A stretch of 64,000 bases of DNA, from positions 1 through 64,000 of the IMG/VR virus record IMGVR_UViG_3300023202_000383; one strand, 5' to 3'. The notes below the pieces were generated by a model. That model did not search any database and was not told the origin of the DNA. It saw only the letters and a program-made list of their open reading frames with translations. Shown here in pieces: positions 2,603 to 45,993 of this stretch. Position numbers and translations under genes: made by a program. The first letter of the stretch is position 1. Each line of letters starts with the position of its first letter.

Positions 2603-2634
2603 CCTCCATTTTAGATTTGACGGAGGGTGATATA

Positions 2635-2952: not shown

Positions 2953-2973
2953 AGTTTCACCTCATTTTATTTT

Positions 2974-3886: not shown

Positions 3887-3920
3887 TACATATAATATGC
3901 GCGTTATTATTTGATAACAA

Positions 3921-4241: not shown

Positions 4242-4270
4242 GCCAATGAAAATACTATCTGTCTTATATA

Positions 4271-5275: not shown

Positions 5276-5296
5276 ACCAGATTATAATATCTTTGT

Positions 5297-6940: not shown

Positions 6941-6974
6941 AACAAGTAAATACCGGCTTAGTATTCAACTACTT

Positions 6975-29013: not shown

Positions 29014-29205
29014 ATGGACGCCGACAAAGTATATAAAGATCTAAAGGATGAAGCTAATGCTCTCATTGGTCGCGAGAGAGAGCTGGAGAGTAGGATAGAA
29101 GCTGTCAAAACTTTGAGAAGCAATAACAGAGATCGAAGAGTTAGGATTGAGAAGCTTGAGGCTCAGCTTGCGGAATTAATGGATGACGTTCTTGATAACA
29201 AATAA
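29014..29205 (+). CDS. small coiled-coil protein
   Basis: GAGGGG RBS; heptad pattern. Confidence 0.6.
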   Translation: MDADKVYKDLKDEANALIGRERELESRIEAVKTLRSNNRDRRVRIEKLEAQLAELMDDVLDNK

Positions 29206-29232
29206 GAAATAAACGCTGGTTTATAAAGTGGT

Positions 29233-29991
29233 ATGGCTAGAGAGTTCTTTGATACTGTTGCTACTAAAGCTGGTTTGGCTGGCGAATATGAAGAACTAAT
29301 TGAGTCTGAATTCGCCGCCTCGGCTGGACCAGCGTATACGCCCGGCGAAGATGGAATTTTTAGGGTAGTTGCCTCTAGGACAATTCAGTTATTGAAGGGT
29401 AGTCCAATCTATGTGGAGACTTTTCAGGACTCTGCTGCCACCCTACGAGTTCCGTCTGGGCTAATAGCAAGCAATGATGCCAACGATGGTAGATTTTATT
29501 TTGTCAAGAACAGCGGAATTGGGAATGTTGCATTACAAGATCACTTAGGTGGATCTTTGGCGGCAATCCGTAAAGGTCAATTTGTTGTTGCCCTACATGG
29601 AGATGATGATAATTGGGATGCTTCTGGGTTGCTTAGTTCCGACGCCGTCGTCGAAGTCAAGAACACGTTGACGACCACGGACACACTGCTGAACACGATC
29701 GCCACGATCGACGTCGACCCCAGCACCGTACACCATCTGGACGTGACGATCACGGCGCGGGAGGGCGACAATAATAGAGGGTCGTTCGTGCGTAAGGCCA
29801 CGATTTACCGTAATTCGACGGGCGGGGCAGCAATCGAGAATAACGTAATCGTGGTATTTGACGAGAGCAGCAGCGGTAACTTTAAGATAGCTGTCGTGGC
29901 GAGCGGCAACAGCATACTCATTCAGGTTCAGGATGAGCAGGGGCAAACGGTGAACTGGACCAGTTGGCACAAACTCTACTCACAGGCGTGA
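29233..29991 (+). CDS. putative fibre/structural protein, chimeric (AT-rich 5' half, GC-rich 3' half)
   Basis: Codon composition switches abruptly near 29640 with no break in frame. Confidence 0.65.
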   Translation: MAREFFDTVATKAGLAGEYEELIESEFAASAGPAYTPGEDGIFRVVASRTIQLLKGSPIYVETFQDSAATLRVPSGLIASNDANDGRFYFVKNSGIGNVALQDHLGGSLAAIRKGQFVVALHGDDDNWDASGLLSSDAVVEVKNTLTTTDTLLNTIATIDVDPSTVHHLDVTITAREGDNNRGSFVRKATIYRNSTGGAAIENNVIVVFDESSSGNFKIAVVASGNSILIQVQDEQGQTVNWTSWHKLYSQA

Positions 29992-29992
29992 C

Positions 29993-30634
29993 ATGATTAC
30001 CGGCATCACACAATTCGGGTTGGAGGGGCGTGTAGCAACGGTGGATCACGACCCGGCTATCGTGTCGACCGATGTCCCCGCAGGTTCGATTATCCTGTCG
30101 ACCTCCACAGGATTGCTCTACCGAAAACTCACCGGCGGCAGCAACACGGATGTGTTGCCGATGACCGCTTCCAGTCAGCCGTTCGATTGGGACAGCGGGG
30201 CGTCGGCGGTCGCGGCGGTCGTCGCGGCCGGGATGCTGTCGCTCGAATTGCTTGCCGATACCGACTCGAAGGTAGTCGGCGGCGACGTTGCCCCGCTGCA
30301 CGTCGACCTCGATCAGGCGTTGGAGCTTGACGTCAAGATCGTCACCCTCAGCTTGGGCGACGCGTCGGCCGACGCGCACCTGCGGCTGACGGCCCGCTAC
30401 GTGGGGTTGGGCGAGGCGGCGGACAAGACGCCCGACGAGACGATCGACCACATCTTTGAAGTCGCCAACGTAGATAAGTGCGTGCACGCCGTGACGTTCA
30501 CACTGGACCCGTCGCTTATCTCCCCCGAAGACCTGCTAAACCTGGAGCTGTCGCGGCTGGGCACGTCAGCGAGTGACGTGTTTACCGGCTCCATCGGCGT
30601 TGCCGAGAGGTCGCTGCTGAGGTTCTTTAACTGA
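29993..30634 (+). CDS. putative structural (beta-rich) protein in GC island
   Basis: Coupled to neighbours; high GC3. Confidence 0.65.
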   Translation: MITGITQFGLEGRVATVDHDPAIVSTDVPAGSIILSTSTGLLYRKLTGGSNTDVLPMTASSQPFDWDSGASAVAAVVAAGMLSLELLADTDSKVVGGDVAPLHVDLDQALELDVKIVTLSLGDASADAHLRLTARYVGLGEAADKTPDETIDHIFEVANVDKCVHAVTFTLDPSLISPEDLLNLELSRLGTSASDVFTGSIGVAERSLLRFFN

Positions 30635-31164
30635 TGGCAAGCACGTACGAACTGATACTGTTCCGCGAGGAGACCCGAGACGACGGGAAGGTGGCGTTGC
30701 TGCGTATCCCGTTGGTGGCCGGTGCGGGGATCGACCTCGACGCGGTGATCGGGGAGGTATCCGCCGGTAGCGGTGTGAGCGTGCAGGAGGGATACGCCGA
30801 GAGCGAAGGGACCAGTTCGACGACCAGCACCAACTTTCAGCAAAAGCTCCGCGCCAGCTTGACGGGTCTAGACGCCGGTACGTATGAGGTGGCGTGGTCT
30901 TGTGAGGTGTTGCCCGGCAAAAACAATCTGGCTGCCCGCGTGCGGGTTCAAGTGGATGACACGACGACGCTAAACAGCCCTGACCCGGTCCTCAATCGAG
31001 ACAATAGCGGGGGCAACGTGAAGGGCTGGATGCCTCTCAGTGGGTTCCGTCAATTGGCATTGAGCGCCGGGGATCATGACTTCGACATCGACTTTGCTTC
31101 ACCTCAGAACGGAAAGTCAGTAGATATCCGGTTTGCGCGTATCAAAATAGCGAGGACAAATTAA
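30634..31164 (+). CDS. putative structural/fibre-tip protein in GC island
   Basis: TGATG coupling; beta-sandwich-like composition. Confidence 0.65.
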   Translation: MASTYELILFREETRDDGKVALLRIPLVAGAGIDLDAVIGEVSAGSGVSVQEGYAESEGTSSTTSTNFQQKLRASLTGLDAGTYEVAWSCEVLPGKNNLAARVRVQVDDTTTLNSPDPVLNRDNSGGNVKGWMPLSGFRQLALSAGDHDFDIDFASPQNGKSVDIRFARIKIARTN

Positions 31165-32106
31165 GTGGCCGAGCAAGCATACACGTACAGCATCGCCAGC
31201 GACTTCCCGTCGGGCGCGGTCAACACGCAGAAGCTGCACGACGAGGTCGTGGCCGACACGGCGATCACGACGCAGCTCGACCGCATCGACACCGACGGCG
31301 ACGGCTTGTCAATCGTGTTTCAGGCGGCGCTGTCGGCGGCGGAGAAGACGGCGCTGGACGGCGACACGACCGGACCGGCCGGGGGGCTGATCGCGCAGCA
31401 CGACAACAGCGCGTCCGCCCCCGACTACGGGAAGATGCAGATCGACGGGATCTCCCCGGACGCCAACGGCTCGCTGCCGCAGGCCCCGATCATCTCCACG
31501 CCGGGCCACCGGCTCAACGACCGCGACGTGCTGGTGCGGGTGGGCGAGTTCGACAACCCGTTCGAGGACCTGCGGGTCAACCCCGACGACAACAAGGAAG
31601 TGGCGTGGGGCGAGGTCACGTGCGACCCGGCCGACACCGATCCGGCGAACAAGACCGGGGTATTCAAGCTCGACGGCAACGGCGACTGGGTCCGCTGCAC
31701 CGACCAGACCGACGCGGCCGCCAACGCCGGGCTCACGGTCCTGGAGTACCAGGCCCGGCAGGGCGGCGTGGCCGGGGGCGATGCGCTCAAGTACGACGTG
31801 CGGGGCGGGACGCTGTGGGTCGACTCCAACGTGCCGGACGACGGCGACCGCTGGTCGCACCGCGTCTATTCGGTCGGTGCCCCGGACCTGTCGGCCGTCC
31901 TCGGCGGCCGGGTGCCGTTCTTCGACGGTTACCTGTTTCCCTATCGCAACAACTGGATGCAGACGCTCAATCCCGTGGCGTTCCCGATGGATCCGTCGGC
32001 GTCGGCGGCGGCGAGCATCGTCCGCGTGTGGTTCTATTACAAGGCGGGCACGGCGTACGAGCACGTGCTGCGGTTCCACCTGTACCGACCGACCGGAAGC
32101 TGGTAG
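31165..32106 (+). CDS. putative structural protein in GC island
   Basis: GTG start directly after the upstream stop; very high GC3. Confidence 0.7.
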   Translation: MAEQAYTYSIASDFPSGAVNTQKLHDEVVADTAITTQLDRIDTDGDGLSIVFQAALSAAEKTALDGDTTGPAGGLIAQHDNSASAPDYGKMQIDGISPDANGSLPQAPIISTPGHRLNDRDVLVRVGEFDNPFEDLRVNPDDNKEVAWGEVTCDPADTDPANKTGVFKLDGNGDWVRCTDQTDAAANAGLTVLEYQARQGGVAGGDALKYDVRGGTLWVDSNVPDDGDRWSHRVYSVGAPDLSAVLGGRVPFFDGYLFPYRNNWMQTLNPVAFPMDPSASAAASIVRVWFYYKAGTAYEHVLRFHLYRPTGSW

Positions 32107-32118
32107 GGTTTCCCATTC

Positions 32119-32190
32119 ATGAAGCTAATATTCTGCCCAGACTGCCGGGACGTGTTTAAGCTAGTCCGCGATGAGCCCCGTAAATGCTGA
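32119..32190 (+). pseudogene. truncated N-terminus of a small Zn-binding protein (MKLIFCPDCRDVFKLVRDEPRKC)
   Basis: CxxC...C start that stops at the island boundary. Confidence 0.5.
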
Positions 32191-32237
32191 GATTCTTGCT
32201 ATATCGAGACCCATCTGCTTAGTATTTGGATTAAGCT

Positions 32238-32888
32238 ATGGCTGACAAGATCAGTGTGCTTATGCCAACATATAATCGTGCGCACTTGATAGGTGTGTCT
32301 ATAAAGTCTATATTGTCCCAGACCCATAAAAATGTTGTTTTGTGCATCTATGATGATGGGTCTACTGACAATACAGAAGATGTCGTAAAATCATTTGGCG
32401 ATAACAGAATCATATATCATAAATCCGGAAAGAATTCTGGGTGTCCAGTTGCTAGAAATAAACTTCTTGAGATGGCCAATACTAGGTATGCTTGTTGGCA
32501 AGATAGTGATGATATCTCAAATAAGCATAGAATAAGAGAACAATTGAAGGCTATAAAGAAGTCGAAGGCGGCTATGGTTTGGTCTACGTTTAGGTGGTTT
32601 GACAAAGATATTGGCGATTCTTGGATGGAAGAACCAAAATCGCATAGTGGTACGGCTGCCCATGCTAGCATAATGTTTGAAGTATCTAAGGCCGTGCCAT
32701 TTAGATTGGTAAAAACTTTGGGTGGAGAAGATGCTAAGTGGCGTAGAGAAATAGAATCAGTTTATGGCAGGACGTTAAAAATCCCCAAAATATTGTATTA
32801 TGTAAGAAAGCACAATGATAGGATTGGGGTATGGAAGAAGAATCCTAAAGCCAATAAAGACTGGTACAACAGGATGGTCAAAAGATGA
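32238..32888 (+). CDS. glycosyltransferase family 2
   Basis: ISVLMPTYNR, YDDGSTD, WQDSDD. Confidence 0.92.
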   Translation: MADKISVLMPTYNRAHLIGVSIKSILSQTHKNVVLCIYDDGSTDNTEDVVKSFGDNRIIYHKSGKNSGCPVARNKLLEMANTRYACWQDSDDISNKHRIREQLKAIKKSKAAMVWSTFRWFDKDIGDSWMEEPKSHSGTAAHASIMFEVSKAVPFRLVKTLGGEDAKWRREIESVYGRTLKIPKILYYVRKHNDRIGVWKKNPKANKDWYNRMVKR

Positions 32889-33529
32889 CACTAAAATATT
32901 TAGTGGTTGGGACTGGCAGATGTGGTACTGGCTATATATCAAAATCGTTTGATAAAATTGGCATCCCATGTGGGCATGAAGAAATATTTAGCTTAACTAG
33001 AGTTAAACGCATAGATAACTTAAGAGTCAAAGAAAATCTAAATAAGTCCAAAAAAGAAGCCGAGTCAAGTTGGCTAGCCGTTCCGTGGTTAGATAATTAT
33101 GTGATAATACCGGAAGATTGTAAGATCATTCATATAACTAGACATCCAAAGGATACCATAGAATCACTTTTAGACACTGGAATGTTATCTAGATATGACA
33201 ATAAATATACACAATTTGCGTTTAGAAATATGCCGAGGATGAGGCCGGAGTATGACCCTATTATAAATTGTGCTATTTGGTACGTTTGGTGGAACAGGAA
33301 AATAGAAAACACAACCAGAAATGTAATAAGGCATAAAGTAGAAGACGATATAACTAATTTGTTTGATAGAATAGGACTGCCACACAATAATAAGCTATTT
33401 AATAACACTAAATATAATAGCAGGGTATCTAAAAAGAGAAGACAAGTAGATCTCAAGGAAGAACTTAGCGGGAAACCGATATTAAAATATTTATTGAGCA
33501 TGGCAAGCGAATATGGATATGAAATGTGA
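32885..33529 (+). CDS. P-loop sulfotransferase-like protein
   Basis: VVGTGRCGTGY, GHEE, IIHITRHPKDTIES. Confidence 0.7.
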   Translation: MTLKYLVVGTGRCGTGYISKSFDKIGIPCGHEEIFSLTRVKRIDNLRVKENLNKSKKEAESSWLAVPWLDNYVIIPEDCKIIHITRHPKDTIESLLDTGMLSRYDNKYTQFAFRNMPRMRPEYDPIINCAIWYVWWNRKIENTTRNVIRHKVEDDITNLFDRIGLPHNNKLFNNTKYNSRVSKKRRQVDLKEELSGKPILKYLLSMASEYGYEM

Positions 33530-33702
33530 AAGACGTCGGCAAAGCCAAACTGGAATCAGAGAAAGCTTTAACTGAGTATCTAAAATGCCAGCAAGAACTG
33601 CTGGTAATGATCAATAAACAAATGGATCTGGGAAGAATCTACGCTGAGAAGAGAGCCGAATATTTGGCTTTGAAAGAAGATAATGAGCCAGGAATTGATT
33701 AA
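33526..33702 (+). CDS. small helical hypothetical protein (58 aa, absent from the ORF track)
   Basis: GTG overlapping the upstream TGA; open to TAA at 33702. Confidence 0.45.
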   Translation: MKDVGKAKLESEKALTEYLKCQQELLVMINKQMDLGRIYAEKRAEYLALKEDNEPGID

Positions 33703-35327
33703 GGTTTCAATATAAATTTATAATGTCCAGCATCCCACAGTCTTCTATATTTATTATTAAACATATTTTCGGCCTCGGTAAGACGCGAGTCGAAATTTTC
33801 TAGTAATTTTGATAATTTGTGTTTTTGAAAGTGTTGGCGAGAATACAATATCGATGTGTTGCCGTCTTTATAATATTTATAATTTGGCTTAGTTAAACCG
33901 CATGGTTTGAATCCTAATTTTTTATATAAATTTCCTGTCGAATATCTTGCGTCTGCATATGTTAAAATTGATTTTGGGTCATGTAATGCTATAAAATGAT
34001 TTAGTAGTTTTCCTGCTCCCCCGATAGCTGTTGAACCTATAGCTTGTGCGTATCTTATTATTTCCCATTTATATTTATGGTGCTTGGCAAAAGACATGCA
34101 TGCGACTAATTCTCCATTATATGTTAATCCAATTCTTACCGATGCATCCCGCGATCCATATATATGGTTTTCAGTCATAAATGAATCGTAATCTTTTGTG
34201 TTCAACGATATTATTTTACATTTTCTGGCGTATAATTTTGATGAATACCCAAGTTTATGATTTATTATTGATTTGACTATATTTTGTTTGTTTGACCATT
34301 CGTCCTCGTTTATTTGCAGAAGTTGTATATTGTTTTCTACGCATCTAGTATGTTTAGCTTGATGTTTAAATCTTTCGTCTTTTGATTCAGTATGGTTGTA
34401 TGAATGGTAATATAACCCATTATATTCGATAGCTACGTTATGATTTGGCAGATAGATATCGATTTCTAATGGATATATTGTCTTTCTATCGTTAATAATA
34501 TATTCAGTATTTATCGATTTTATATATTCTATTATTTCTTGGTGTGGTTTAGAAATCGAGTTAGAGCATTTAGGGCATCCGTGTCCGTTTAAATGATTAC
34601 TTACTGTTTGGGAAAAATTGCCGTGTATGATACATGTTATTGTGATTGGTTCCATGTACCCGCTGTAATTGGATTTGTCATATGAATATTTGTCGCCGTG
34701 GATCGATATTGCTCTATTTATTATATCTTCTGTTGTAGGTGTGTTTATTGCACATTTAGGGCAACCGTGGCCTTCGAGGTGCCTTCTGGTTAATTGTTTA
34801 AATTTGCCATGTTTCGGGCATTTTATTATTATGTGACTTCGATATGATTTATATATCGAATCGCTATAATCATATTTGTTATTGTGTAATTTTGATGATT
34901 TATTTATAAAATCGTCAATTGTATTACTTAAATTTTTTATTCCGCATAATTTGCACCCATACTTTCCGTAGATGTGTGATTTTGGTGTTTGTTCGAATTC
35001 GCCGTGTTCTGGGCATATTATTGTGATTTTTGTATAGCTATTGACATACTCAGATTTACTATAATCATACTTATCGCCGTGCACTAATGTTGCTTTTTCT
35101 ATAAATTTATTTAGTGGCAATTTAAGATTTTGTTTTTGTTGTTGCCTAAAACATTTTTTGCATCTTGCGCCTTTTTTGTGATTTCTAGCGCGTTGTCTAA
35201 ACTCTCCGTGTTCCGGGCATATTATTGTGACGCGTCCGCTCAATTCAATTTCTGTAACCTTTGAATAGTCATACTTGTTATTGTGTATCAGGGATGATTC
35301 ATGTATAAAGCGTTGTAATTTATTCAT
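33699..35327 (-). CDS. Hef-like free-standing endonuclease: DUF723-type Zn repeats + Vsr/EDxHD nuclease + Mom/GNAT-like domain
   Basis: Four KYDYSK...ICPxHGxFxQ...CxxC repeats; EIDIYLPNHNVAIEYNGLYYH; GGAGKLL..LTYADARYS.G.LY..LGF. Confidence 0.8.
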   Translation of the reverse strand: MNKLQRFIHESSLIHNNKYDYSKVTEIELSGRVTIICPEHGEFRQRARNHKKGARCKKCFRQQQKQNLKLPLNKFIEKATLVHGDKYDYSKSEYVNSYTKITIICPEHGEFEQTPKSHIYGKYGCKLCGIKNLSNTIDDFINKSSKLHNNKYDYSDSIYKSYRSHIIIKCPKHGKFKQLTRRHLEGHGCPKCAINTPTTEDIINRAISIHGDKYSYDKSNYSGYMEPITITCIIHGNFSQTVSNHLNGHGCPKCSNSISKPHQEIIEYIKSINTEYIINDRKTIYPLEIDIYLPNHNVAIEYNGLYYHSYNHTESKDERFKHQAKHTRCVENNIQLLQINEDEWSNKQNIVKSIINHKLGYSSKLYARKCKIISLNTKDYDSFMTENHIYGSRDASVRIGLTYNGELVACMSFAKHHKYKWEIIRYAQAIGSTAIGGAGKLLNHFIALHDPKSILTYADARYSTGNLYKKLGFKPCGLTKPNYKYYKDGNTSILYSRQHFQKHKLSKLLENFDSRLTEAENMFNNKYRRLWDAGHYKFILKP

Positions 35328-35397
35328 AATAAAATATCTTTGATTACAGATAGATCCTCTGCATTGCGTGTTGTATTTTATATACATGGTTGACATA

Positions 35398-36747
35398 ATG
35401 AAATATAATGGTCCTACAGACTTTGCTCATCTTCATGTCCATACTTTATATAGTACGCTTGATGGGGTTCAATCTCCAGAAGAATTGTTTTCTACGTGCA
35501 AAGAAAGAGGATGGAGTGCGTTAGCCGTAACCGAGCATGGGACATTGGCATCAGTCCCAGACAATTATGCGGCTGCAAAAGAATACGGCGTAAAGTATAT
35601 AGTTGCTTGCGAAATTTATTACAATGATTATGAACCGACTAGGCAAGATCTTGTTAAAGAAGATGTTAAAATTCGCAAGCTAAAAGAAACCGACCCTAAT
35701 TTTTATTATAAAATGTCTAGAAATAGGCATTTAACAGTCCTTGCTAAAAACGATAAGGGTGTGGAGAACATAATAAAATTGACCACTCAAGCGTGGGAGA
35801 CTGGATTTTATTATAGGCCGAGGATATGGTTTGATAAATTAGATGAATATAGAGAGGGTTTATTGGTATTGAGTGGATGTTTAAATGGGCCTGTTTCTCA
35901 TGAGTTAAGACATGGGAATTTAAGGTCTGATGATATGAGAGGTGCATTAGACTATATACATAAATTCAAAGAAGTATTTGGCGATGATTATTTTGTAGAA
36001 TTGCAGATGCCTTGTCTTCCTGATTTTCCTGACCACAAAGTCTTCCGTGCATTAAATCATATAGCTAACAAGTACAATATACCGAAAGTTCTTACAAATG
36101 ACGCACATTATCTAAATCGTGAAGACTTTGAAATCCAGAAATTAATGATGGCTATATCCCAGGGTTTAACTGTTGATGATCCGAATCTGTTCCATGTAAA
36201 TAGTGATGAGCAATATCTTAAAACCAGAGCAGATCTATGGCACACATTTAAGACTGGGAAAGACGGCAAATATTGTGAATATGTGACTGATAGCGAATTT
36301 GAAGATATGTGCAACAACACATTGGTAGTTGCCGGTAAATGTGATAATTTCGAACCTGATTTGTCGTCGAAGGTTCCTACATTAGATAATGACGAGCAGA
36401 TCTTAAGAACCCTTGTGTACGATAGGCTTAAGCAAGAGGGATTCGATAAAGATGAAACTAAGTACAATATAGACAATAAAGAAGTTACTTATAGAGAACA
36501 AGCCGACATAGAATTGAATAGGTTTATTGAGAAGAATTTCGCCAGCTATTTCTTGATAACCAGAGATTTGGTGCAGTATAGTTTAGATAACGGTTGGCCT
36601 GTTGGACCGCGAGGTTCAGTTGGCGGCAGTCTAGTGTGTTATTTATTGGGCATAACCGAGTTGGATCCAATAAAATGGAATTTATCGTTTAACAGGTTTT
36701 TAAGCCCCTCGCGCGGAGGAAAGATGCTAAACATTAAGGCAGAATAG
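35398..36747 (+). CDS. dnaE: DNA polymerase III alpha, fragment 1 (PHP domain + N-terminal palm)
   Basis: HLHVHTLYSTLDG, TEHG, NDAHY, YFLIT, GPRGSVGGSLV, RFLSPSR, then stop. Confidence 0.9.
   Translation: MKYNGPTDFAHLHVHTLYSTLDGVQSPEELFSTCKERGWSALAVTEHGTLASVPDNYAAAKEYGVKYIVACEIYYNDYEPTRQDLVKEDVKIRKLKETDPNFYYKMSRNRHLTVLAKNDKGVENIIKLTTQAWETGFYYRPRIWFDKLDEYREGLLVLSGCLNGPVSHELRHGNLRSDDMRGALDYIHKFKEVFGDDYFVELQMPCLPDFPDHKVFRALNHIANKYNIPKVLTNDAHYLNREDFEIQKLMMAISQGLTVDDPNLFHVNSDEQYLKTRADLWHTFKTGKDGKYCEYVTDSEFEDMCNNTLVVAGKCDNFEPDLSSKVPTLDNDEQILRTLVYDRLKQEGFDKDETKYNIDNKEVTYREQADIELNRFIEKNFASYFLITRDLVQYSLDNGWPVGPRGSVGGSLVCYLLGITELDPIKWNLSFNRFLSPSRGGKMLNIKAE
36728..36746 (+). repeat. direct repeat flanking the inserted endonuclease gene (partner at 38604-38628)
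   Basis: TAAACATTAAGGCAGAATA here; the partner reads TAAACATTAAG-ATTAAG-GCAGAATA. Confidence 0.85.
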
Positions 36748-36777
36748 GTCTAATTCAGTTATAAGCAAATATATAAT

Positions 36778-38613
36778 ATGATAAATGTACAACGAAGCAA
36801 AGAAGTGTTTGGATTAAAAAGCATCAATAGGATTCCTAAAAAACAGAAAGTTATATGTAATTGTGATGTTTGTGGGGTTGAATCACGTATTACTAAGCAG
36901 CACCATTATATATGCAGCAAACGTGCTGGTTTATATAGATGTAAAGATTGTGGTAGAAAAGCCATGGCATCTAAAGTATCAAAAGCCATGATATCAAAAT
37001 GGCAAAACGACAAATACAAATCCAAGCAGATTGGCAGGACTCATAGCGATGAATTAAAGGAATATGCTAGGCAGAGAGCTATCAAATTGTGGAAAGATAA
37101 AGAATATGTGGCAAAGTATAATGCTGGGTTTGACCCGGCCAAGGCTAGAAAGAATCTAAAGGCCACCAGATCGGTTGCCAATAAAGCTGCATCGCTTGCT
37201 ATGGCTGATAAATGGCAGGAAAAAGAATATCGCAGTAAAATGTCAGATCAATCAGCTAAGCTATGGAGTAACGATTGTTATAGAAACAAAGTAATAAGTA
37301 GCCTCAAAAAACATTATTCGTCATTAGAAGTTTTAGATAGATGTTCAAATAGAGCGAAAAAATTGTGGAAGAATAATGATTATAGGGATAGGTGGTTCAA
37401 ATCATTTATGCAATCATTTGGCAATGAAAGGTTACACGAAATTTCATTACAAAGTGCCAAGAATTGGGGAGACCGAGAATATAGAGATAAAATAGAATCA
37501 CAATGGGACGATCAAAAACGTGCAGAAATGTCCGAAATATGTAAAGAATGGTGGACTGATGATAGGAGAGCTGAAGTTTCTGAGATTATGATAAGTAGGT
37601 GGTCGGACCCTAATTTTAGAAAGAAAACAATAAAAGCATTTATTGATTCATGGACTGAAGAACGCAGGCAGGCTGCTAAAGATTCATGGACTGAAGAACG
37701 CAGGCAGGCTGCGTCTGATAGATCCAGGAATTTGTGGAAAGATCCGAAATATGTTAGCAAGATGGTTGATATGATCGGGAGGCCGTCGTCTTTAGAAATT
37801 CAATTCGCCAGCTTATTGGATGATTATGGCATCGAGTACACGCAACAGTTCCATTTAGGGCCATATTTATTTGATTTTAAGGTCAACGATGTCTTAATAG
37901 AAATTAATGGCGATTATTGGCATAGATTGCCGAAGACAATATCAAAAGACAAGGCTAAAGCTACTTATGTTGAAAAACATTATCAGCAATATCAGCTTAA
38001 GTATTTATGGGAGCATGAATTTTATCAATTAGAAAAGATTAATAAATTTATTGAATTCAGTTTTGTTGGTTCTGACGTAGAAGAGGTTGATTTTTCAGAA
38101 TTAAAATTTGTTACTGATATAGATTATGATTCAATAAAATCGTTAATTGAGAAATATCATTATAAAGGAAGTATTGGTCGGGGTGGGGTGTATTATGGTG
38201 TTATATATCGTGGTAATTTGATCGCTGGGTCTGTTGTTGGGTCACCAACTAGGAATGTTGTTGGTGGCGAGTTGTTACGATTTGTTATACACCCACAGTA
38301 TCAGGTCAAGAATCTTGCATCGTGGTTTTTGAGTAGAATCTCAAAGCATGCTTTGAGAGATTATGATTTATTGTTTACATTTGCTGATCCGAATTTTAAC
38401 AATTACGGCACAATATATGAGGCTAGCGGCTGGGAATTTGCTGGCGAAACAAAATCAGATTATTGGTATGTTAGCGAAGACGGTTGGGTTATGCATAAAA
38501 AGACTTTATGGAATAGAGCAAAGAATTTATGTATGTCAGAAAGGTATTTTGCTGAGGTTTTTGGATATAATCGGGTATATGGGTTGCCAAAGAGAAAGTA
38601 TATTAAACATTAA
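36778..38613 (+). CDS. free-standing endonuclease: helical W-repeats + DUF559/Vsr-like nuclease + Mom-like GNAT domain
   Basis: PSSLE...FDFKVNDVLIEINGDYWH; ELLRF...NLASWFLS...TFADPNFNNYGTIYEASGW. Confidence 0.8.
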   Translation: MINVQRSKEVFGLKSINRIPKKQKVICNCDVCGVESRITKQHHYICSKRAGLYRCKDCGRKAMASKVSKAMISKWQNDKYKSKQIGRTHSDELKEYARQRAIKLWKDKEYVAKYNAGFDPAKARKNLKATRSVANKAASLAMADKWQEKEYRSKMSDQSAKLWSNDCYRNKVISSLKKHYSSLEVLDRCSNRAKKLWKNNDYRDRWFKSFMQSFGNERLHEISLQSAKNWGDREYRDKIESQWDDQKRAEMSEICKEWWTDDRRAEVSEIMISRWSDPNFRKKTIKAFIDSWTEERRQAAKDSWTEERRQAASDRSRNLWKDPKYVSKMVDMIGRPSSLEIQFASLLDDYGIEYTQQFHLGPYLFDFKVNDVLIEINGDYWHRLPKTISKDKAKATYVEKHYQQYQLKYLWEHEFYQLEKINKFIEFSFVGSDVEEVDFSELKFVTDIDYDSIKSLIEKYHYKGSIGRGGVYYGVIYRGNLIAGSVVGSPTRNVVGGELLRFVIHPQYQVKNLASWFLSRISKHALRDYDLLFTFADPNFNNYGTIYEASGWEFAGETKSDYWYVSEDGWVMHKKTLWNRAKNLCMSERYFAEVFGYNRVYGLPKRKYIKH

Positions 38614-38628
38614 GATTAAGGCAGAATA

Positions 38629-39015
38629 ATGGATAAGAATCAGATTAAGTTAGGAATAACATCTATACAGCGATCCGTTGTTGTGTGCAATAGGTTGGGG
38701 CTGTTTGAAGCAGCGTCGGCTGCTGTTTACAGTATGATAGATGCTATAAACGCTTTGGTAGAAGGCAACGAAGAAACTGCTGCTGAAGATTGTTTCAAAT
38801 CATCGTTTCTGATATATAAGGTTTTGTACGAATCATTTTCTGAAAAGTTTGAGAAGAGATCCAGTCTAGCGGAAGACGCGGAGAAAATTCTGAAAGAATC
38901 CAATGATTGGAATGCATTTGCAAAAGCGTCCAGTAATTATATGGATGCAATAGCAGAGGTTGTACATGGAACGGAATTCGAGGCCGAATTCTTGAAATTT
39001 AAAGTTGGCTCCTGA
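38629..39015 (+). CDS. hypothetical helical protein between dnaE fragments
   Basis: TAATG-coupled start. Confidence 0.65.
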   Translation: MDKNQIKLGITSIQRSVVVCNRLGLFEAASAAVYSMIDAINALVEGNEETAAEDCFKSSFLIYKVLYESFSEKFEKRSSLAEDAEKILKESNDWNAFAKASSNYMDAIAEVVHGTEFEAEFLKFKVGS

Positions 39016-39496
39016 TAAAATAGACATATATTGCTTTGCTAGAGGCAAGGATAGTCCATACGCATATGGCATCCTTGTGGTCGCACATTATGGCGAAGAG
39101 TGTAAAGAGCACGAGAAATTTGGTTTCGTAGATGCGAAAACGCCTACTGAGGCCAATATCAAGATAATATTGATGGCGTTGAAGTCCGTTAAAGATGACT
39201 TTAAGGACCTCGATATCACTCTTCATGTAAGAAAATCTGCATTTTATTGTGTTGATAGAACATCTTGGGGAACCTATAGAACAAAGCCAACCAGACATCA
39301 TAAACTGATAGGTGCGGTGAGAAGTTTGTTTGACGAGCTTCCTAATGCAAGATCAAAGATGATATTCTCCAAATACCAAAAGTATGCTAAAAGATGTATA
39401 AAAAAGTCTAGGAGCATGTTTCATGCGAAACGACGCGAGTTGGGACGATATAAAGGTGATAGCGGTCAAGGAGCTCGTCCAGAAAAAGCTACCTAA
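39005..39496 (+). CDS. RNase HI-fold protein, catalytic acidic residues lost
   Basis: IDIYCFA (for IYTDG), YGILV, TPTEANIKIILMAL, ITLHVRKS (for TDS). Confidence 0.5.
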   Translation: MAPDKIDIYCFARGKDSPYAYGILVVAHYGEECKEHEKFGFVDAKTPTEANIKIILMALKSVKDDFKDLDITLHVRKSAFYCVDRTSWGTYRTKPTRHHKLIGAVRSLFDELPNARSKMIFSKYQKYAKRCIKKSRSMFHAKRRELGRYKGDSGQGARPEKAT

Positions 39497-41192
39497 CGAG
39501 TATAAGTCTAGATTTAAGACAGAAATAAAAGAGATCGAAAAGCAAGGTGCCAATGCCTATTGGCAGCAGCTATATAACGAAGATCACAAATACGACACGA
39601 ATAACAATGGTTTGGTCTTGCCCTGGATATTAGGCATGACCGATGTTGATCCTTTAAAATCAGACCATCAATATACAAGGTCGACGGACTGGCCTGACAT
39701 AGATGTTGACTGCTTACCGACAGCCAGAGATAGGATCAAAGAATATGCTGCAGAGAAATATGGCAAAGACAAAGTCTGTAGCGTAGGGTTGTGGCAGACA
39801 TATAAATTTAGGTCAGCATTACAAGACTCTGTTAGAGGTGTTGGTGGTAATGTCAAAGAAATCATGGACATCACTAAGCAGTTGCCGGATGATGTTGACG
39901 ATCTGAAAGATGGTGGTTTTGCAAAGTGCACTGAATGTAAAACGAAGCATAATGAGCATAAATGCCCAGAATGTGGATCAACAGAAATAGATGGGATCAC
40001 ATTTGGGAAGGTGATAGAAGATCATGAAGAATTAAAGAAATATTATGGAGAGCATCCTAAAGAAGTCAATCTAGCCGTTAGAATGATAGGAAAAATAAAA
40101 GCGCTGGGTAAACACGCTGGCGGCCTTATTATATCTGATAGAGTGCTATTCGGAAATGTCCCTATGGGCGTTTCAAATGGCCATTGGACAAGTTTGTGGA
40201 CTGAAGGCAGGAGTACTCAATTATCTAAATTCGGGTATATTAAGTGGGATATGCTTGGCCTTAAAACTTTGCAGTATATTCATGAGTGCTGCAAATTAAT
40301 CAATAAAACCAGAAATTACAAGTTTAATGTTATTCCATGGAAAGGAATGGACCCATGGGAAAACTGTCTTGGATACTATTGGGATAATAATGGCGTAAAA
40401 CACAAAGTGAGGATGGATGACGAAAAAACCTTTGAGATGATGAACGCCATAAGGACCGATACAGTATTCCAATTCGACACGGCACTGCAGAAGAAGATTT
40501 TAGAAAATGGCGTAAACAGCTTTTATGATTTACAGATATTTAATGCAATGGGCCACCCAGGTCCGTTGCCAATGATCGATGAGTATGTAGCTCGACGTGA
40601 CAATGAGGACTACGATTGGAAGAGCGAGGAGCATCCTGATGTTGCATCGTTGCTTAAAGACACAAAGGGTATCATAGTATATCAGGAGCAATTGCAGAAG
40701 ATCTGGCAACATTTGGCTAAATTCACGGCTCCCGAAGCTGAATCTGCGAGGAAGGCTGTTGCTAAGAAATGGACGGAAAAACTAAAGCCTGTTGAGGAGA
40801 AGTGGGTAAGGGGCGCATCTAAGATAATGGGCGAGCGGCGGGCTAAAGATTACTGGGGGAAGATGAAAACTTTCGGTAGGTATGCCTTCAATAAATGCCT
40901 GGACAAAGATACTATATTAGAAGATCCTACAAATGGCAATACTATAACTGTTGAAGAGCTTTTTGAATCTAAATCGAGCTTTAAATTAGAATCTTATTGT
41001 GATGATGGATTTGTGGTCGATGACGTTGATGAGATAATCGAATGCGGTGAACAAGATATTTATGAAATAGAATTAGATAATGGGGCGATTCAGAAAGTCA
41101 CTTTGAATCATAAGTTTAGGTGCGATGATGGAAAATACTGGACAGTCAAAGAAATCATCGAAGGCAATTATTCCATCGTGGTTCGACCATAA
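39423..41192 (+). CDS. dnaE: DNA polymerase III alpha, fragment 2 (catalytic palm/fingers) fused to N-half of split intein (40896-41189)
   Basis: WPDIDVDC, GKHAGG, IKWDMLGLKTL, IVYQEQ, YAFNK|CLDKDT...KVTLNHKF. Confidence 0.9.
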   Translation: MRNDASWDDIKVIAVKELVQKKLPNEYKSRFKTEIKEIEKQGANAYWQQLYNEDHKYDTNNNGLVLPWILGMTDVDPLKSDHQYTRSTDWPDIDVDCLPTARDRIKEYAAEKYGKDKVCSVGLWQTYKFRSALQDSVRGVGGNVKEIMDITKQLPDDVDDLKDGGFAKCTECKTKHNEHKCPECGSTEIDGITFGKVIEDHEELKKYYGEHPKEVNLAVRMIGKIKALGKHAGGLIISDRVLFGNVPMGVSNGHWTSLWTEGRSTQLSKFGYIKWDMLGLKTLQYIHECCKLINKTRNYKFNVIPWKGMDPWENCLGYYWDNNGVKHKVRMDDEKTFEMMNAIRTDTVFQFDTALQKKILENGVNSFYDLQIFNAMGHPGPLPMIDEYVARRDNEDYDWKSEEHPDVASLLKDTKGIIVYQEQLQKIWQHLAKFTAPEAESARKAVAKKWTEKLKPVEEKWVRGASKIMGERRAKDYWGKMKTFGRYAFNKCLDKDTILEDPTNGNTITVEELFESKSSFKLESYCDDGFVVDDVDEIIECGEQDIYEIELDNGAIQKVTLNHKFRCDDGKYWTVKEIIEGNYSIVVRP

Positions 41193-41920
41193 AATTATAA
41201 GCTACAATGATAATATAAAAAGTAATGATACAATAAAATCAATATGTTCAATATGCGGCGATAAAACAAGTAGAAAATTTATCGAACATAAAAGGCTGTG
41301 CAATAGGCAATCAAGATATGTTAGCTCATATCGGTGCCGGTCTTGCCTGACAAAGTCAGATGATTACAAAATCAAAATAAAAAAAGCTGAATTCGACACA
41401 GATGCTATGAGTAAGAGGTCAAAAAAGCATTGGGCTAATTTATCAAAGCACGATCGTAAGGCATTAACTAGCAAGATAACAGCCAAATTAAGAACTGATG
41501 CTGTAAGAGAAAAAATTAGCAAGTCTATAAAAGAAAAATTTGACGATCCAGATTATATTCGTAAAGTTTCGGAGGCGAGAAAGAAATATTGGGAAAATTA
41601 TGAATATAGGAAAAATAGGACGTTATCGATAGATGAATTTATAGAGAGATCTAAGTCAGTTCATGGCGATAAGTATGATTATTCGAAAGTTCAATTCGAT
41701 TCTGCCAGGAATTCTAAAGTTGATATTATATGTCCAGATCATGGTGTCTTCCGACAAAGACCGTTATGGCATTATTTGTATGGTAATGGGTGCCCAGATT
41801 GTTAGACAAGAATTCCAAAAGCACAAACTTAGCGGTAAATTAGACAATTTTGATAGTAATTTGACTGAACTACAGAATATGTTCAATAATGGATATAGGG
41901 TGGGATGCTGGACACAATAA
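41125..41920 (+). pseudogene. internally deleted Hef-like endonuclease remnant between the intein halves
   Basis: ORF 41125-41805 has W-repeats and one DUF723 repeat, then stops; 41805-41920 in another frame reads RQEFQKHKL...LTELQNMFNNGY, the family's C-terminal end; nuclease and GNAT domains are absent. Confidence 0.7.
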
Positions 41921-41922
41921 AT

Positions 41923-43071
41923 ATGAATGGAAACGTAGCTAAAATAAAGTCTATAAAATATGTCGGTAAAAGAAGATCATACAACATATGTATGGAATCT
42001 AGCCAACATAATTATTTAATAAAACCATCTAGCGGGCAACCTATTCATAAAAATTCCCATAGCATAGGCTATATAACGGAGGCATATTGGTGTGCATGGT
42101 TAAAGGCTCACTTTCCGCCAGAATGGTGGGCGTCTGTTATGAGTTATTGCCACCATGTGAGACTCAAGAGATACATGAATGTGGCAAGGTCTGAGGGCGT
42201 TAAATTTGGTCCTATAAATATAGAGGACCTGTCACCATATTATTCAGTCGACCCAGAGACGCATAAAGTCACTCCTGGTCTTATAAGCATAAAGGGGATC
42301 GGCCAGAAAGCTGCAGACAAACTGTCTGGTAAAGGAAAGTATGATAATATAGATGATTTCGTGGATAAATTTGGAAAAGACAAAAGGGTGATGGAAAGAT
42401 TGATACTTCTTGGTGCTTTTCAGAAATACCACCCAAATATAAAAGCCACTTGGATTTGGTACCAATATAAATATTGTAGTGGCGCTGCCTCTAGAGAAAT
42501 CAAGAAGCACATTAAGTCTGAACTGCTGGCTGACTGGACCGATGAGAGAATTGAACAAGAACGCAAAAGACAGGCGGATGAATATTTTAAATTGTATCCA
42601 AATAGGCGTAAGCTTCCGAATAAGATAGCCAACTGGAATCCTAAGCCTGATGATACAAGAGAAAATGTTATGGCATTGATAGAAGACGATTATGCTAATG
42701 CCGAAAAATTCAATTTTGAAAAGGAATATCTAGGGTACTATTGGAGGAATCCAATAGAATATTTTAAGACTGATTCAGATAATACAATTATAAATGCCAA
42801 GAAGAATGGTGGGGGGTTCATAGATGTAGTGATAGAGTCTTTCGAAATAGCGGAGACTCGCAAAGGAGGATTATTCGGCAGGTTGGCAGTAATGGATGGC
42901 AGCACAGCCTGTAACGTATACATGTGGGAAGGCGAGCTCGATGCCTCTGAGAGCTTCATCGATGACGGGATAGGTATTAGACTAAATGTTGATTATAACG
43001 ACGGAAGAAGGACATTCTCAGTCAAGAGAGGATCAGTTCCTGTGATACTTGAGATGTCTGAGGACCAGTAG
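41923..43071 (+). CDS. dnaE: C-half of split intein (41923-42054) fused to DNA polymerase III alpha fragment 3 (HhH + OB)
   Basis: KIKSIKYVGKRRSYNI...IHKN|SHSIGY..AYWCAWLKAHFP; GLISIKGIG; EKEYLG. Confidence 0.88.
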   Translation: MNGNVAKIKSIKYVGKRRSYNICMESSQHNYLIKPSSGQPIHKNSHSIGYITEAYWCAWLKAHFPPEWWASVMSYCHHVRLKRYMNVARSEGVKFGPINIEDLSPYYSVDPETHKVTPGLISIKGIGQKAADKLSGKGKYDNIDDFVDKFGKDKRVMERLILLGAFQKYHPNIKATWIWYQYKYCSGAASREIKKHIKSELLADWTDERIEQERKRQADEYFKLYPNRRKLPNKIANWNPKPDDTRENVMALIEDDYANAEKFNFEKEYLGYYWRNPIEYFKTDSDNTIINAKKNGGGFIDVVIESFEIAETRKGGLFGRLAVMDGSTACNVYMWEGELDASESFIDDGIGIRLNVDYNDGRRTFSVKRGSVPVILEMSEDQ

Positions 43072-43593
43072 ATGTTAATTGATACAGACAAACTATGCTG
43101 TGATTATTGCGGGGAGATATTAGATGGGGATTTCTATTATTATTCGTTTGATTTTAAGGAAATAAATGTCCAAAACATGGCTGTGTCTGTAAAGGATGGC
43201 ATATTTAGTGCTGATGTATGCAATGATTGTATGGAATCCTACAAACAACGAGTAAAGCAAGCATATAAGCCACCTGACAAAGACGCAATATATTGTGACA
43301 TATCGGGCGAAAAATTGTCTGGCAATATATTATACTATTTGTGTATCATAACGCGCGTTGATGTGCGTTTTAGCGGAAAACTATATTACTGTGAAGTATG
43401 TAAACAAAATAAGAAAGTAAGTAACATCCCCTGTGAAGAATGCCCAGAAAATCACCAATTAACAAGAAATGCAGATGTCAAAAAAGATGAAGAGCATTTT
43501 GAATTTAATTTTAGCAAACAAATGTATGATTTGTTTGTAAATCATGTCGACATCATTAAGAAAAGAGGAATAGAAGAATGGGCGAAGATATGA
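43072..43593 (+). CDS. Cys-rich zinc-binding hypothetical protein
   Basis: Several CxxC pairs arranged as an internal repeat. Confidence 0.7.
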   Translation: MLIDTDKLCCDYCGEILDGDFYYYSFDFKEINVQNMAVSVKDGIFSADVCNDCMESYKQRVKQAYKPPDKDAIYCDISGEKLSGNILYYLCIITRVDVRFSGKLYYCEVCKQNKKVSNIPCEECPENHQLTRNADVKKDEEHFEFNFSKQMYDLFVNHVDIIKKRGIEEWAKI

Positions 43594-44075
43594 ATCCATA
43601 TAATATGTCTGAAATTAAAATAGAAGACGAGATCGTTCTAGGCAGGCCGGTCGAATGGGACTCCGAACCAGACAATGCAGACGGATCAAAATCTGATGGT
43701 ACCTATATTGAGCCAATTAAGTATGAGACTACATGTCCATATTGTGGGAGCTTAATTAGCTATGAGTCGAAATTTTTATCCGTGCAGTGCCAAGAATGTG
43801 GTAAGGGCGAGTTTGAAGAAAGAGATCCTGTTGACCACGAATCGCCAGTCGATCTAGATATTGAATTAACGGACATTGAAGGCGAAGAAGATGAAATCGA
43901 CACAGAAATTGATGGACAAGAAGAGAGCGAAGAGAATGAGGAAGAGGGAGGGTCAGAAGAGAAAGAAAATGCTGAAGATGAGAATGATCAAGAGATCGAT
44001 AAAAAGGGCGACGAAAGAGAGAATAATGAGGAAGATGGAGAAGAAATAGATATCGATAAGCTTTTAGAAGATTGA
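43578..44075 (+). CDS. zinc-ribbon protein with acidic tail
   Basis: CPYC...CQEC; E/D-rich C-terminus. Confidence 0.65.
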   Translation: MGEDMNPYNMSEIKIEDEIVLGRPVEWDSEPDNADGSKSDGTYIEPIKYETTCPYCGSLISYESKFLSVQCQECGKGEFEERDPVDHESPVDLDIELTDIEGEEDEIDTEIDGQEESEENEEEGGSEEKENAEDENDQEIDKKGDERENNEEDGEEIDIDKLLED

Positions 44076-45001
44076 TGAATTATATTATTGGTGGTGGATT
44101 CGTTGGGCTGTTGGCTAGGGACATATTGGGTCCTGGGTATTCTATTATACCGATTGGCAAATCAAGATTTTATTCTCATAAGCCGCCAGTGGCCGATGAT
44201 TTTATAATTCGGGATGAAGCCATTGATGATTATATGAATCAGTTCGCATTCATGCCAGTATATCATAAAATAGGATACTCTATAGCCGGTCAGATAACTT
44301 ACAACCATGACCTGGCGTTGGACGCATGGTTGCATAAAAAATTCGGGGACGATATCCCATCTCATGCCGATCAATATATGAGATCCCATACTGAATTTTT
44401 TGTGTACGGTGATTGCTCTGAGATATACACTAGATTGAAGAACAGATATAAAGAAGAGATGATAAGTAATCATCAGAAATATGGTGTAGTTACTTCAATC
44501 TCCAATCATGTCATTAAGACTGAAACCGGTGCTAGCATCGAGTATGACAATGTTGTGTCTACAGTTCCATTGAATGTTATCACCGGTTGGCTTGGCAAAG
44601 AAACTAAGTTGCCAGTTTCTGATGTGTGGTGTTATCATTTAAAAACCGATAAGCTGGATTTTGAAGGCGCAAACGGCCTTTTAGTCTGTGACCCTGAGAT
44701 AGAAGGCATATATTATGCCAATAAGATTAGTAACGACAATTATATTTTATATTCTAATAAAAAGATAGAATACCCAGGCCAGCTGTTCCATAGCTTGGTT
44801 GGAGACTTTGTGCTGATAGGCGAAATAAATATCCCGGAAGCGATGCCGCGTGGCGATAAGCCGAAGCCAGCTTCATTTAGTGACGGCTATCTGATGGCAA
44901 TGCTAGAGGATAATGGTGTTACTCCCGTTGGGTCGTGTGCTGAATGGGATGACTGTTTGGATATTGGGTCCGTGATTAAAAAACTGATTCGAATGAAATA
45001 A
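44075..45001 (+). CDS. FAD/NAD-binding oxidoreductase-like protein
   Basis: IIGGGFVGL dinucleotide-binding motif; VVSTVPL; VGSCAEWD. Confidence 0.7.
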   Translation: MNYIIGGGFVGLLARDILGPGYSIIPIGKSRFYSHKPPVADDFIIRDEAIDDYMNQFAFMPVYHKIGYSIAGQITYNHDLALDAWLHKKFGDDIPSHADQYMRSHTEFFVYGDCSEIYTRLKNRYKEEMISNHQKYGVVTSISNHVIKTETGASIEYDNVVSTVPLNVITGWLGKETKLPVSDVWCYHLKTDKLDFEGANGLLVCDPEIEGIYYANKISNDNYILYSNKKIEYPGQLFHSLVGDFVLIGEINIPEAMPRGDKPKPASFSDGYLMAMLEDNGVTPVGSCAEWDDCLDIGSVIKKLIRMK

Positions 45002-45990: not shown

Positions 45991-45993
45991 ATG

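Follow-up and report, generated by a model that had tools for sequence, protein, structure and literature searches.

The Hef protein of phage U5 is an accepted homing endonuclease that cleaves nrdB (reviewed in PMC2988022), and proteins of this type were placed in a Vsr-like family which the authors named EDxHD (PMC3239194). Vsr-like endonuclease genes were also described in fractured DnaE genes, where they lie between the halves of a split intein and are later lost (Dassa et al., 2009, PMC2677866). Besides, Mom domains fused to restriction-type nucleases were reported in jumbo phages and proposed to protect and attack (Iyer et al., 2021, PMC7824862). The present analysis concerns three open reading frames (ORFs), ORF1, ORF2 and ORF3, located in the first 64 kb (64,000 nucleotides, hereafter the window) of the 256.5-kb virus record IMGVR_UViG_3300023202_000383, whose products join an N-terminal repeat array, a Vsr-like nuclease core and a C-terminal GNAT domain. 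These three genes are mobile free-standing homing endonuclease genes of the Hef/EDxHD (Vsr-like) superfamily, and the sequence at 41125-41899 is a decayed one. Their architecture has been described before, along three separate lines, namely Hef as EDxHD, the Mom-nuclease fusions and the fractured genes. In the homing-endonuclease literature searched, the GNAT tail of Hef-type enzymes is unmentioned, and neither a link between tail and homing nor a test of the tail was found.

The closest described relatives are Hef and Hef-like proteins (U5 Hef, Hef85 of Campylobacter phage NCTC12673, F-LimVII of a Dickeya phage, and those of PA5oct), with which ORF1 and ORF3 share the whole architecture. The nuclease and GNAT core is 30-46% identical, with at least 80% covered, in 366 phage records, and identity over the full length is 34-39%. 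The link of ORF1 to U5 Hef rests on annotations and on PMC3239194. ORF1 falls into the PHROG homing-endonuclease families phrog_559 (4.5e-131) and phrog_3339 (8e-95), and it matches 952 phage records, its nuclease and GNAT core alone matching 416, among which the labels “Hef”, “Hef85”, “Hef-like homing endonuclease”, “F-LimVII” and “putative nuclease/acetyltransferase protein” are encountered; the name “HNH endonuclease” is often wrongly given to genes of this type. As a rule, these relatives carry several diverged copies in each genome (11-12 places in some Campylobacter phages, 5 in PA5oct), and their positions, beside or inside conserved genes, are alike. ORF2 differs from them by another N-terminal array and by a tail nearer to Mom, and represents a sister family that is common in metagenomes and was found in 1 record among isolated phages. 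No NCBIfam model matched ORF1 or ORF2 and PADLOC returned a weak “HEase” match for ORF1, hence neither gene is filed as a known defence system. A megablast search of 33000-39500 against isolated phages gave no match.

The positions of all features are collected in Table 1. The frame of ORF1 is open up to 35396 (565 amino acids), and ORF1 residues are numbered here in that longer frame. Its N-terminal part is built from zinc-ribbon modules of the DUF723/DUF4379 type (H-G/N-D/N-K-Y-D/S-Y ... C-P-x-H-G-x-F ... C-x-x-C), presumed to form a DNA-binding array, and zinc-ribbon repeats of the DUF723 type are likewise found in ORF3. The complete ORF3 gene extends over 63349-65016 in the parent record (555 amino acids), its part in the window encoding the last stretch of the nuclease core and the GNAT domain in full. 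ORF1 and ORF3 are 53% identical across the last 211 residues, while ORF1 and ORF2 are 26% identical over about 200 residues spanning the nuclease core and the tail. The different modules at the N-terminus of ORF2 are also predicted to form a DNA-binding array. Within this array, a perfect 32-nucleotide direct repeat, spaced by 36 nucleotides (37645-37712), adds one unit of 12 amino acids, and public assemblies break exactly at this repeat, where contig depth doubles. A sequence-only reading of the window had located the three ORFs where they were found, the end it gave for ORF1, 35327, being the ATG of the 542-residue product. Pfam, profile searches and structural models agree with the domains it had named, i.e., variable DNA-binding repeats, a Vsr/EDxHD nuclease and a Mom-family GNAT domain, and its view of ORF2 as having a different N-terminus and a tail nearer to Mom was borne out by the repeat map and the Pfam Mom match. 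The exact Mom-type pattern that it had assigned to all three tails fits ORF1 and ORF2 and fails in ORF3, where a Val occupies the second position (EVSRF).

The nuclease core ties these proteins to I-Bth0305I, a proven homing enzyme. Family profiles built from about 120 homologues each matched its catalytic domain (3r3p) at 5.5e-8 for the Hef type and 3.6e-9 for the ORF2 type, and in Foldseek the ORF2 model aligned to 3r3p with a target template-modelling (TM) score of 0.77 and a root-mean-square deviation of 2.8 A. All 120 homologues of ORF2 keep D366, G378, H382 and D391, and nearly all keep E375 and K394. The family columns of E311, D313, E324, H331, H345 and K348 in ORF1 are likewise invariant or nearly invariant. 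The last Asp of the E-D-x-H-D set is kept by the ORF2 type (D391), whereas in the Hef-type family it aligns with an invariant His (H345 of ORF1). Modular DNA-binding repeats precede the core in I-Bth0305I as in the ORFs, and both are tied to introns, inteins and fractured genes. However, I-Bth0305I ends at its nuclease domain, whereas the ORFs carry in addition the GNAT tail.

Mobility is best seen in dnaE, which in the window is split into three pieces. The start of piece 1 given in Table 1 (35398) was chosen, its reading frame beginning at a GTG at 35368. Since the Rfam scan of 30000-46000 for introns found none, pieces 1 and 2 are taken as separate polypeptides and pieces 2 and 3 as trans-spliced, and a group I or II intron was rejected as the cause of the breaks. 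No intein is found at the break between pieces 1 and 2. At the junction of pieces 2 and 3, the split-intein halves enclose the remnant of a Hef-type gene, of which an open 226-residue ORF (41125-41805) represents the N-terminal DNA-binding part (positions 184-428 of the 576 of the phrog_681 profile) and a 99-nucleotide segment (41801-41899) part of the GNAT tail; nothing is left of the nuclease core, and little of the GNAT domain. The remnant announced by the sequence-only reading is therefore real, with similarity matches to both parts. This locus is a fractured gene at the stage of endonuclease-gene decay, in line with the cases described by Dassa et al. (2009, PMC2677866), in which dnaE is broken by a split intein, a free-standing Vsr-like gene lies between the halves and decay is predicted. 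An intein-less break holding a Vsr-like gene (the SbcD-like case) is also described there, its counterpart being the piece 1/piece 2 break that holds ORF2, but the endonuclease genes of the window carry a GNAT tail as well.

The same region was compared in 34 related jumbo-phage loci; a three-sequence alignment of DnaE piece 1 used as the query retrieved 32 loci, a single piece-1 protein retrieving none. The piece 1/piece 2 break was present in every locus showing both pieces, with a gap of 881-6594 nucleotides, hence it is ancestral. Its occupants vary, an ORF2-type gene starting 2-31 nucleotides past the stop of piece 1 in the window, L030 and L031, the other related loci showing none at that place. 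The piece 2/piece 3 junction was uninterrupted, with the N-intein half absent, in 21 loci; an intein was present but no Hef gene in L054-56, a split intein together with an intact Hef-type gene in L061, L064 and L065, and a split intein with the remnant in the window. Hef-type insertions were found inside piece 2 at three further points (L048/49, L031 and L059), and a Hef-type gene on the opposite strand upstream of piece 1 in L064/65, as is ORF1 in the window. At least five sites in and around dnaE are thus polymorphic. In a quick, unrooted maximum-likelihood tree of 29 distinct DnaE piece-1 sequences, the window's among them, which shows the scatter of presence and absence and not its direction, gene-bearing loci each had a gene-free sister (L030/L036, L031/L047, L061/L038, L064-65/L060 and L048-49/L066) with support of at least 96 in the Shimodaira-Hasegawa-like approximate likelihood ratio test (SH-aLRT). 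These genes were repeatedly gained or lost, no direction being claimed. Because they are present or absent at several dnaE sites, with gene-free sister genomes, they are regarded as mobile homing endonuclease genes. The mobile, selfish character put forward in the sequence-only reading is supported by this polymorphism and by the contrast between intact and decayed copies between split-intein halves. In PA5oct, a Hef-like gene splits a DNA polymerase gene likewise.

Further features of the dnaE region were noted. Piece 1 is interrupted in L030, L052, L059, L060 and L064; in L030 the gene called there (5456-7969) has faint Hint and LAGLIDADG matches, the other loci showing only split tblastn matches. 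This adds to dnaE being a hot spot of mobile elements in this phage group. In an alignment of three sequences, the R-F-L-S-P-S-R-G-G-x-M-L-N tail of piece 1 is conserved, and the first 90 or so residues of piece 2 hold a weak second copy of the L-G-I-T-x-x-D-P motif of piece 1 (pairwise E value 3e-4). Between ORF2 and piece 2, two small ORFs of 128 and 163 amino acids (38629-39496) have no family matches; L030 shows, immediately before piece 2, a weak counterpart of the second. Candidate promoters and terminators in 33400-42200 did not exceed those of shuffled sequence (40 vs 37.1 ± 6.8 and 6 vs 4.9 ± 2.4, respectively).

Searches of the whole record with hidden Markov models (HMMs) identified ten full GNAT-tailed proteins in addition to the remnant. 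Hence, the three copies and one remnant counted in the sequence-only reading are real and form only part of the set. The nuclease core motif is present in nine of the ten, the paralogue at 234334-236112 (minus strand) being the one without it; its tail is Mom-related (Pfam Mom, 4e-3; Hef-type HMM, 3e-27) and its middle region is unlike that of the other copies. Identity between paralogues is 41-50% inside each type and 22-27% across types, values by which recent duplication of the copies was ruled out, and their N-terminal modules are shuffled. Their conserved neighbours include dnaE, the tail sheath and tail tube genes, the prohead protease gene, a Hint-domain gene and an AAA ATPase gene, and a DUF2201 gene has paralogues on either side. 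Of the 872 ORFs of the genome, a slightly relaxed Mom-type motif picked exactly the ten GNAT-bearing paralogues, against 0 per shuffled proteome; with this count, together with the hhalign and Foldseek results given below, a chance motif match was rejected for the GNAT tail.

Such a set of genes could also be read as single-chain, restriction-modification-like weapons rather than homing elements, the Mom domain modifying adenines across the phage's own genome and the nuclease destroying unmodified DNA of the host or of superinfecting phages. This has been proposed for such fusions, including five “momylating enzymes” in PA5oct (PMC7824862), a phage in which five places match ORF1; these are most probably its five Hef-like genes, as judged from the equal number. 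The domain fusion is the same as in that study and so is the kind of genome, i.e., jumbo phages with several copies each, but the fusions were treated there as conflict systems, with homing unmentioned, whereas the genes of the window behave as mobile homing endonuclease genes. A genome with ten paralogues whose DNA-binding arrays differ, and the conservation of both the nuclease and the GNAT active sites, would suit a weapon. However, these genes are located within conserved essential genes, right next to them or in the gap of a split intein, and presence and absence among near-identical sisters, together with a decayed copy, are the life cycle of a homing gene and not that of a fixed defence gene. 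Moreover, the nuclease core is homologous to that of the proven homing enzyme I-Bth0305I, U5 Hef cleaves nrdB in a homing context (PMC2988022), and the long modular arrays suggest rare long sites and not frequent short ones. A function as weapons is therefore considered distinctly improbable.

Table 1. Positions of the GNAT-tailed endonuclease genes, their domains and the dnaE pieces (positions 1-64,000 lie in the window, higher ones in the rest of the record).
Feature	Position	Strand	Remarks
ORF1, Hef-type free-standing homing endonuclease gene	33699-35327	-	542 amino acids from the ATG at 35327; product on the record (P0001)
ORF1 residues 27-283, four repeats of ~65 amino acids	34548-35318	-	DUF723, 3.6e-10; DUF4379; regular-expression map
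ORF1 residues 285-377, Vsr-like/EDxHD nuclease core	34266-34544	-	
ORF1 residues 385-565, Mom-lineage GNAT domain	33702-34244	-	
dnaE piece 1 (PHP domain and start of palm)	35398-36747	+	Ends just before the catalytic D-x-D
ORF2, Mom-type superfamily member	36778-38613	+	611 amino acids; starts 30 nucleotides past the stop of dnaE piece 1
ORF2 residues 26-330, one zinc ribbon and repeats	36853-37767	+	Zinc ribbon C29/C32, C55/C58; at least 7 short W-x-D-x-x-Y-R-type repeats
ORF2 residues 335-428, EDxHD nuclease core	37780-38061	+	
ORF2 residues 433-611, Mom-family GNAT domain	38074-38610	+	
dnaE piece 2 (rest of palm and fingers)	39423-40895	+	Up to residues ...FNK
Split intein, N half	40896-41189	+	98 amino acids; begins C-L-D-K-D; stop codon to 41192
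Hef-type gene remnant	41125-41899	+	E values 1.4e-14 and 2.1e-9; between the split-intein halves
Split intein, C half	41905-42054	+	50 amino acids; ends H-K-N; C-extein begins S-H-S
dnaE piece 3 (C-extein, HHH_6 domain)	42055-43071	+	
ORF3, third Hef-type gene, 3' part in the window	63349-64000	-	phrog_3339, 5.7e-73
Hef-type paralogues, start coordinates	33699, 63349, 67937, 75536		HMM search of the record
Mom-type paralogues, start coordinates	36778, 111323, 190439, 243521, 246911		HMM search of the record
Intermediate paralogue	234334-236112	-	592 amino acids; without recognisable Vsr-like nuclease motif

Regarding the tail, the closest characterised protein is the Mom protein of phage Mu (8bv8), a transferase that depends on Gly-tRNA and acts on the N6 of adenine in DNA. 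The GNAT fold and most active-site residues are common to Mom and the ORFs, but Mom stands alone with about 240 amino acids and has neither a nuclease domain nor a DNA-binding array. The Pfam family Mom (PF25680) matched ORF2 at 6.1e-12 (46.1 bits for a gathering cut-off of 27.1) and the paralogue at 190439-191992 with 70.5 bits. The ORF2 family profile matched the sequence of the 8bv8 structure at 1.4e-9, and the probability of the hhalign comparison between the ORF2 family and Mu Mom was 96.4%. The Hef-type tail has no Pfam family of its own. Its profile aligned with that of the ORF2-type family over 162 columns (hhalign probability 99.6%, E value 2e-24), and the Hef-type HMM matched the Mom-type paralogues of the record at 1e-12 to 3e-19. 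AlphaFold models of nuclease plus tail scored high in the predicted local distance difference test (pLDDT 97.9 for ORF1, with a predicted TM score, pTM, of 0.92; pLDDT 93.3 for ORF2). A Foldseek search, which the sequence-only reading had recommended for the C-terminal domains, gave Mu Mom 8bv8 as the top PDB match of both models (2.2e-6 for ORF1 and 2.9e-9 for ORF2), the alignment covering 197-201 columns of the 222-residue chain, and then ordinary GNATs, more than 80 GNAT matches being obtained at an E value of at most 1e-3. Between the last strands, where a helix-turn-helix-like insertion is found in Mom, the models have two or three helices, a likeness of position only. Hence, the GNAT fold of the tail is certain, and kinship with Mom is strong for ORF2; for ORF1 and ORF3 the link is indirect, though consistent. 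As the homology of the latter two is seen only by profile-profile comparison, HMM cross-matches and fold, they are filed as Mom-related GNATs and not as members of Pfam Mom.

The residues tested in Mu Mom, i.e., H58, Y59, R111, S124, D149, R151 and Y159 (PMC13219725; the numbers in PMC7261163 are lower by 10), were mapped onto the ORF2 family (120 sequences) and the Hef family (119 sequences). R111 and Y159 are present in 100% of both, and H58 in 100% and 99%, respectively. Y59 is kept in all ORF2-type proteins and is I or L in the Hef family. N121, scored in the ORF2 family, is kept throughout it. The position of S124 is always S or T in the ORF2 family, and S in 57% and G in 34% of the Hef family. 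D149 is found in 100% of the former and in 87% of the latter (N in 9%), and R151 is replaced by T, N or S in the ORF2 family, being kept in 92% of the Hef family. In ORF1, H411, R448, D482, R484 and Y491 correspond to H58, R111, D149, R151 and Y159, with G462 at the position of S124. In ORF2, H461, Y462, R501, N512, S515, D537 and Y547 correspond to H58, Y59, R111, N121, S124, D149 and Y159, with N539 at the position of R151. By alignment, ORF3 keeps H58, R111, S124, D149, R151 and Y159, all six, with a Ser at the position of S124. The two tail families are only about 20-25% identical, and invariance across such divergent families argues for catalysis by the tail. Activity of the Mom kind appears plausible from these residues and is not assured, because each type misses one residue essential in Mom. 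The families further differ in the cofactor-binding motif A. The Hef type carries a Gly-rich G-G-x-(S/G)-K stretch, absent from Mom, that aligns with motif A of glyphosate acetyltransferase and points to an acyl-CoA donor. The N-x-x-S found at this position in Mom and in the ORF2 type suggests for the latter a donor of Mom's kind (aminoacyl-tRNA).

Alternatively, the GNAT domain might be non-catalytic, positioning the nuclease by DNA binding, base flipping or dimerisation, with its conserved residues holding a flipped base or the fold. The Gly at the Mom Ser position in ORF1 and about a third of its homologues, the Asn that can replace D149 and the missing R151 of ORF2-type proteins would fit such a role, as would the two-domain model of ORF1, which forms one rigid body. 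Besides, the Mom dimer binds double-stranded DNA and an AlphaFold3 model suggests that adenine is flipped out (PMC13219725), and EDxHD enzymes function without a GNAT domain (PMC3239194). On the other hand, four to five polar active-site residues are 99-100% invariant in about 240 sequences at 35-60% identity in two families. Pseudo-enzymes normally drift at active-site positions. In addition, a GNAT that binds a cofactor requires a Gly-rich motif A such as the Hef type has. A purely structural tail is thus judged unlikely.

It could also be envisaged that the tail is active on a substrate other than DNA, either a charged tRNA, as for the TacT/AtaT toxins, or a protein of the host or the phage such as a repair or recombination factor, in which case repair could be biased to recombination or the host slowed. 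Indeed, GNAT substrates are not predictable from the fold, as stated by the authors of the Mom study (PMC13219725). However, the domain is always fused behind a DNA-binding array and a DNA nuclease, Mom came first in Foldseek for both models, and the helical stretch of the models, by its position only, is found where Mom has an insertion required for activity. We therefore regard a non-DNA substrate as very unlikely, below the structural role and the weapon in rank.

The explanation we retain combines the homing endonuclease identity, homing itself and a GNAT domain that marks the target, and as a whole it is held to be somewhat better than an even bet. According to this explanation, the N-terminal array would bind a long site in the allele without the gene, the nuclease would cut this gene-free allele, and recombinational repair from the carrier genome would copy the gene in (homing). 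The GNAT domain would be a working acyl- or aminoacyl-transferase acting, as Mom does, on the N6 of adenine in DNA, although the base marked in the phage of the window may be 2-aminoadenine. Tethered by the same DNA-binding array, it would mark the enzyme's own target, so that packaged and replicating carrier DNA would be immune whereas unmarked competitor DNA would be cut. A single chain would thereby cut and protect, in a manner comparable to type IIG enzymes. The type IIG/IIC enzymes MmeI and BcgI hold DNA recognition, a nuclease and a DNA-modifying domain in one chain and provide a precedent; they use an S-adenosylmethionine-dependent methyltransferase, recognise short sites and are cellular defence genes, no sequence relationship to the ORFs being implied. 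The cut-and-protect role of the GNAT domain is our best guess, drawn from the conservation of the Mom active site and from analogy. For the alternative raised in the sequence-only reading, a nuclease that reads base modification, no evidence was found.

Several points weigh against this explanation. EDxHD enzymes without a GNAT domain, such as I-Bth0305I, home well (PMC3239194), and insertion inside the target gene alone could destroy the recognition site; a protecting mark would then be needless where the gene sits inside its target, because the insertion itself may destroy the site. Each tail type lacks an essential Mom residue, S124 being replaced by Gly in ORF1 and in part of its homologues and R151 being absent from ORF2-type proteins. 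Pfam Mom gave no match to ORF1 and ORF3, and the best Hef-type score, that of the paralogue at 67937-69622, was below threshold (1.2e-3, 18.9 bits for 27.1). As for mobility, the piece-1 tree shows scatter without direction, and contigs of three metagenome runs of one study gave no gene-free variant and were identical to the window, the only contig break in these runs being the 32-nucleotide repeat within ORF2; none of the RNA runs contained this stretch. A broader proposal, put forward tentatively and with more doubt, is that Hef/EDxHD enzymes, the largest free-standing family of phage homing enzymes, would be two-enzyme “homing restriction-modification” elements placing an N6 acyl or aminoacyl mark on the adenine of their target, or on 2-aminoadenine in the phage of the window, a probable Z-genome phage, with a donor that differs by sub-family (acyl-CoA for Hef, aminoacyl-tRNA for Mom).

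The sequence-only reading had attached weight to the presence of a purZ gene. The ORF at 18948-20156 (minus strand), a PurZ-like homologue of adenylosuccinate synthetase, has PurZ as its best NCBIfam model (NF038379, 4e-43) with 147.6 bits, below the cut-off of 300, and matches phrog_1211 at 4.5e-36. In a scan of the two adjacent ORFs, neither a DatZ-like nor a MazZ-like protein was recognised. PurZ-like genes occur in four related jumbo phages and not in PA5oct, which has five places matching ORF1, and the 416 records with the nuclease and GNAT core span many host groups. Because the PurZ score is below cut-off, the core occurs in such varied records and PA5oct has no PurZ-like gene, the co-occurrence looks incidental, and a restriction of these genes to purZ phages was ruled out by PA5oct and the spread of the records.

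Regarding the surroundings, the record is labelled “provirus” (70% complete) in IMG/VR, but with genes for a tail sheath, a tail tube, a prohead protease and its own split DnaE, and with many for homing endonucleases, its content looks rather like that of a lytic jumbo myovirus. Proteins identical to its own are also found on contigs of up to 332 kb. Just past the window, 65060-67902 looks like a second fractured gene. There, a 263-residue ORF comprises an N-terminal host part and a Hint/intein domain ending V-V-G-H followed by a stop, then an ORF at 66252-67262 encodes a helix-turn-helix and a TnsA-like endonuclease domain, and a possible C-terminal host part follows at 67162-67902. This region is bracketed by the Hef-type copies at 63349-65016 (minus strand) and 67937-69622 (plus strand). 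Within the window, 29200-32100 forms a 3-kb island of 63-66% G+C in a genome of about 38% G+C, with four ORFs on the plus strand (29233-29991, 29993-30634, 30634-31164 and 31165-32106). The PHROGs search gave no match for the four, the last three being also without an NCBIfam match; the island may be a foreign cassette, perhaps tail-fibre-like.

Otherwise the locus is ordinary, adding one more case of mobile elements already known and of a fractured dnaE, and its interest lies in the tail. How a homing enzyme spares its own genome is well understood for intron and intein enzymes, where insertion breaks the site, but poorly for free-standing ones. The literatures on homing and on Mom fusions have not been joined, and joining them gives a concrete hypothesis. 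Since the chemistry of Mom (Gly-tRNA, adenine N6) and its structure were published in 2026 and assays exist, the question of the GNAT domain is now testable, the ten diverged copies of one genome, along with the natural filled, empty and decayed sites of its relatives, providing a test set. If this were a Z genome, in which 2-aminoadenine (dZ) replaces adenine (dA), the comparison of dA and dZ would also be of interest. If the proposed mechanism is true, a DNA-modifying domain travelling with the nuclease would be a new answer to self-sparing, and carrier genomes would gain an epigenetic immunity.

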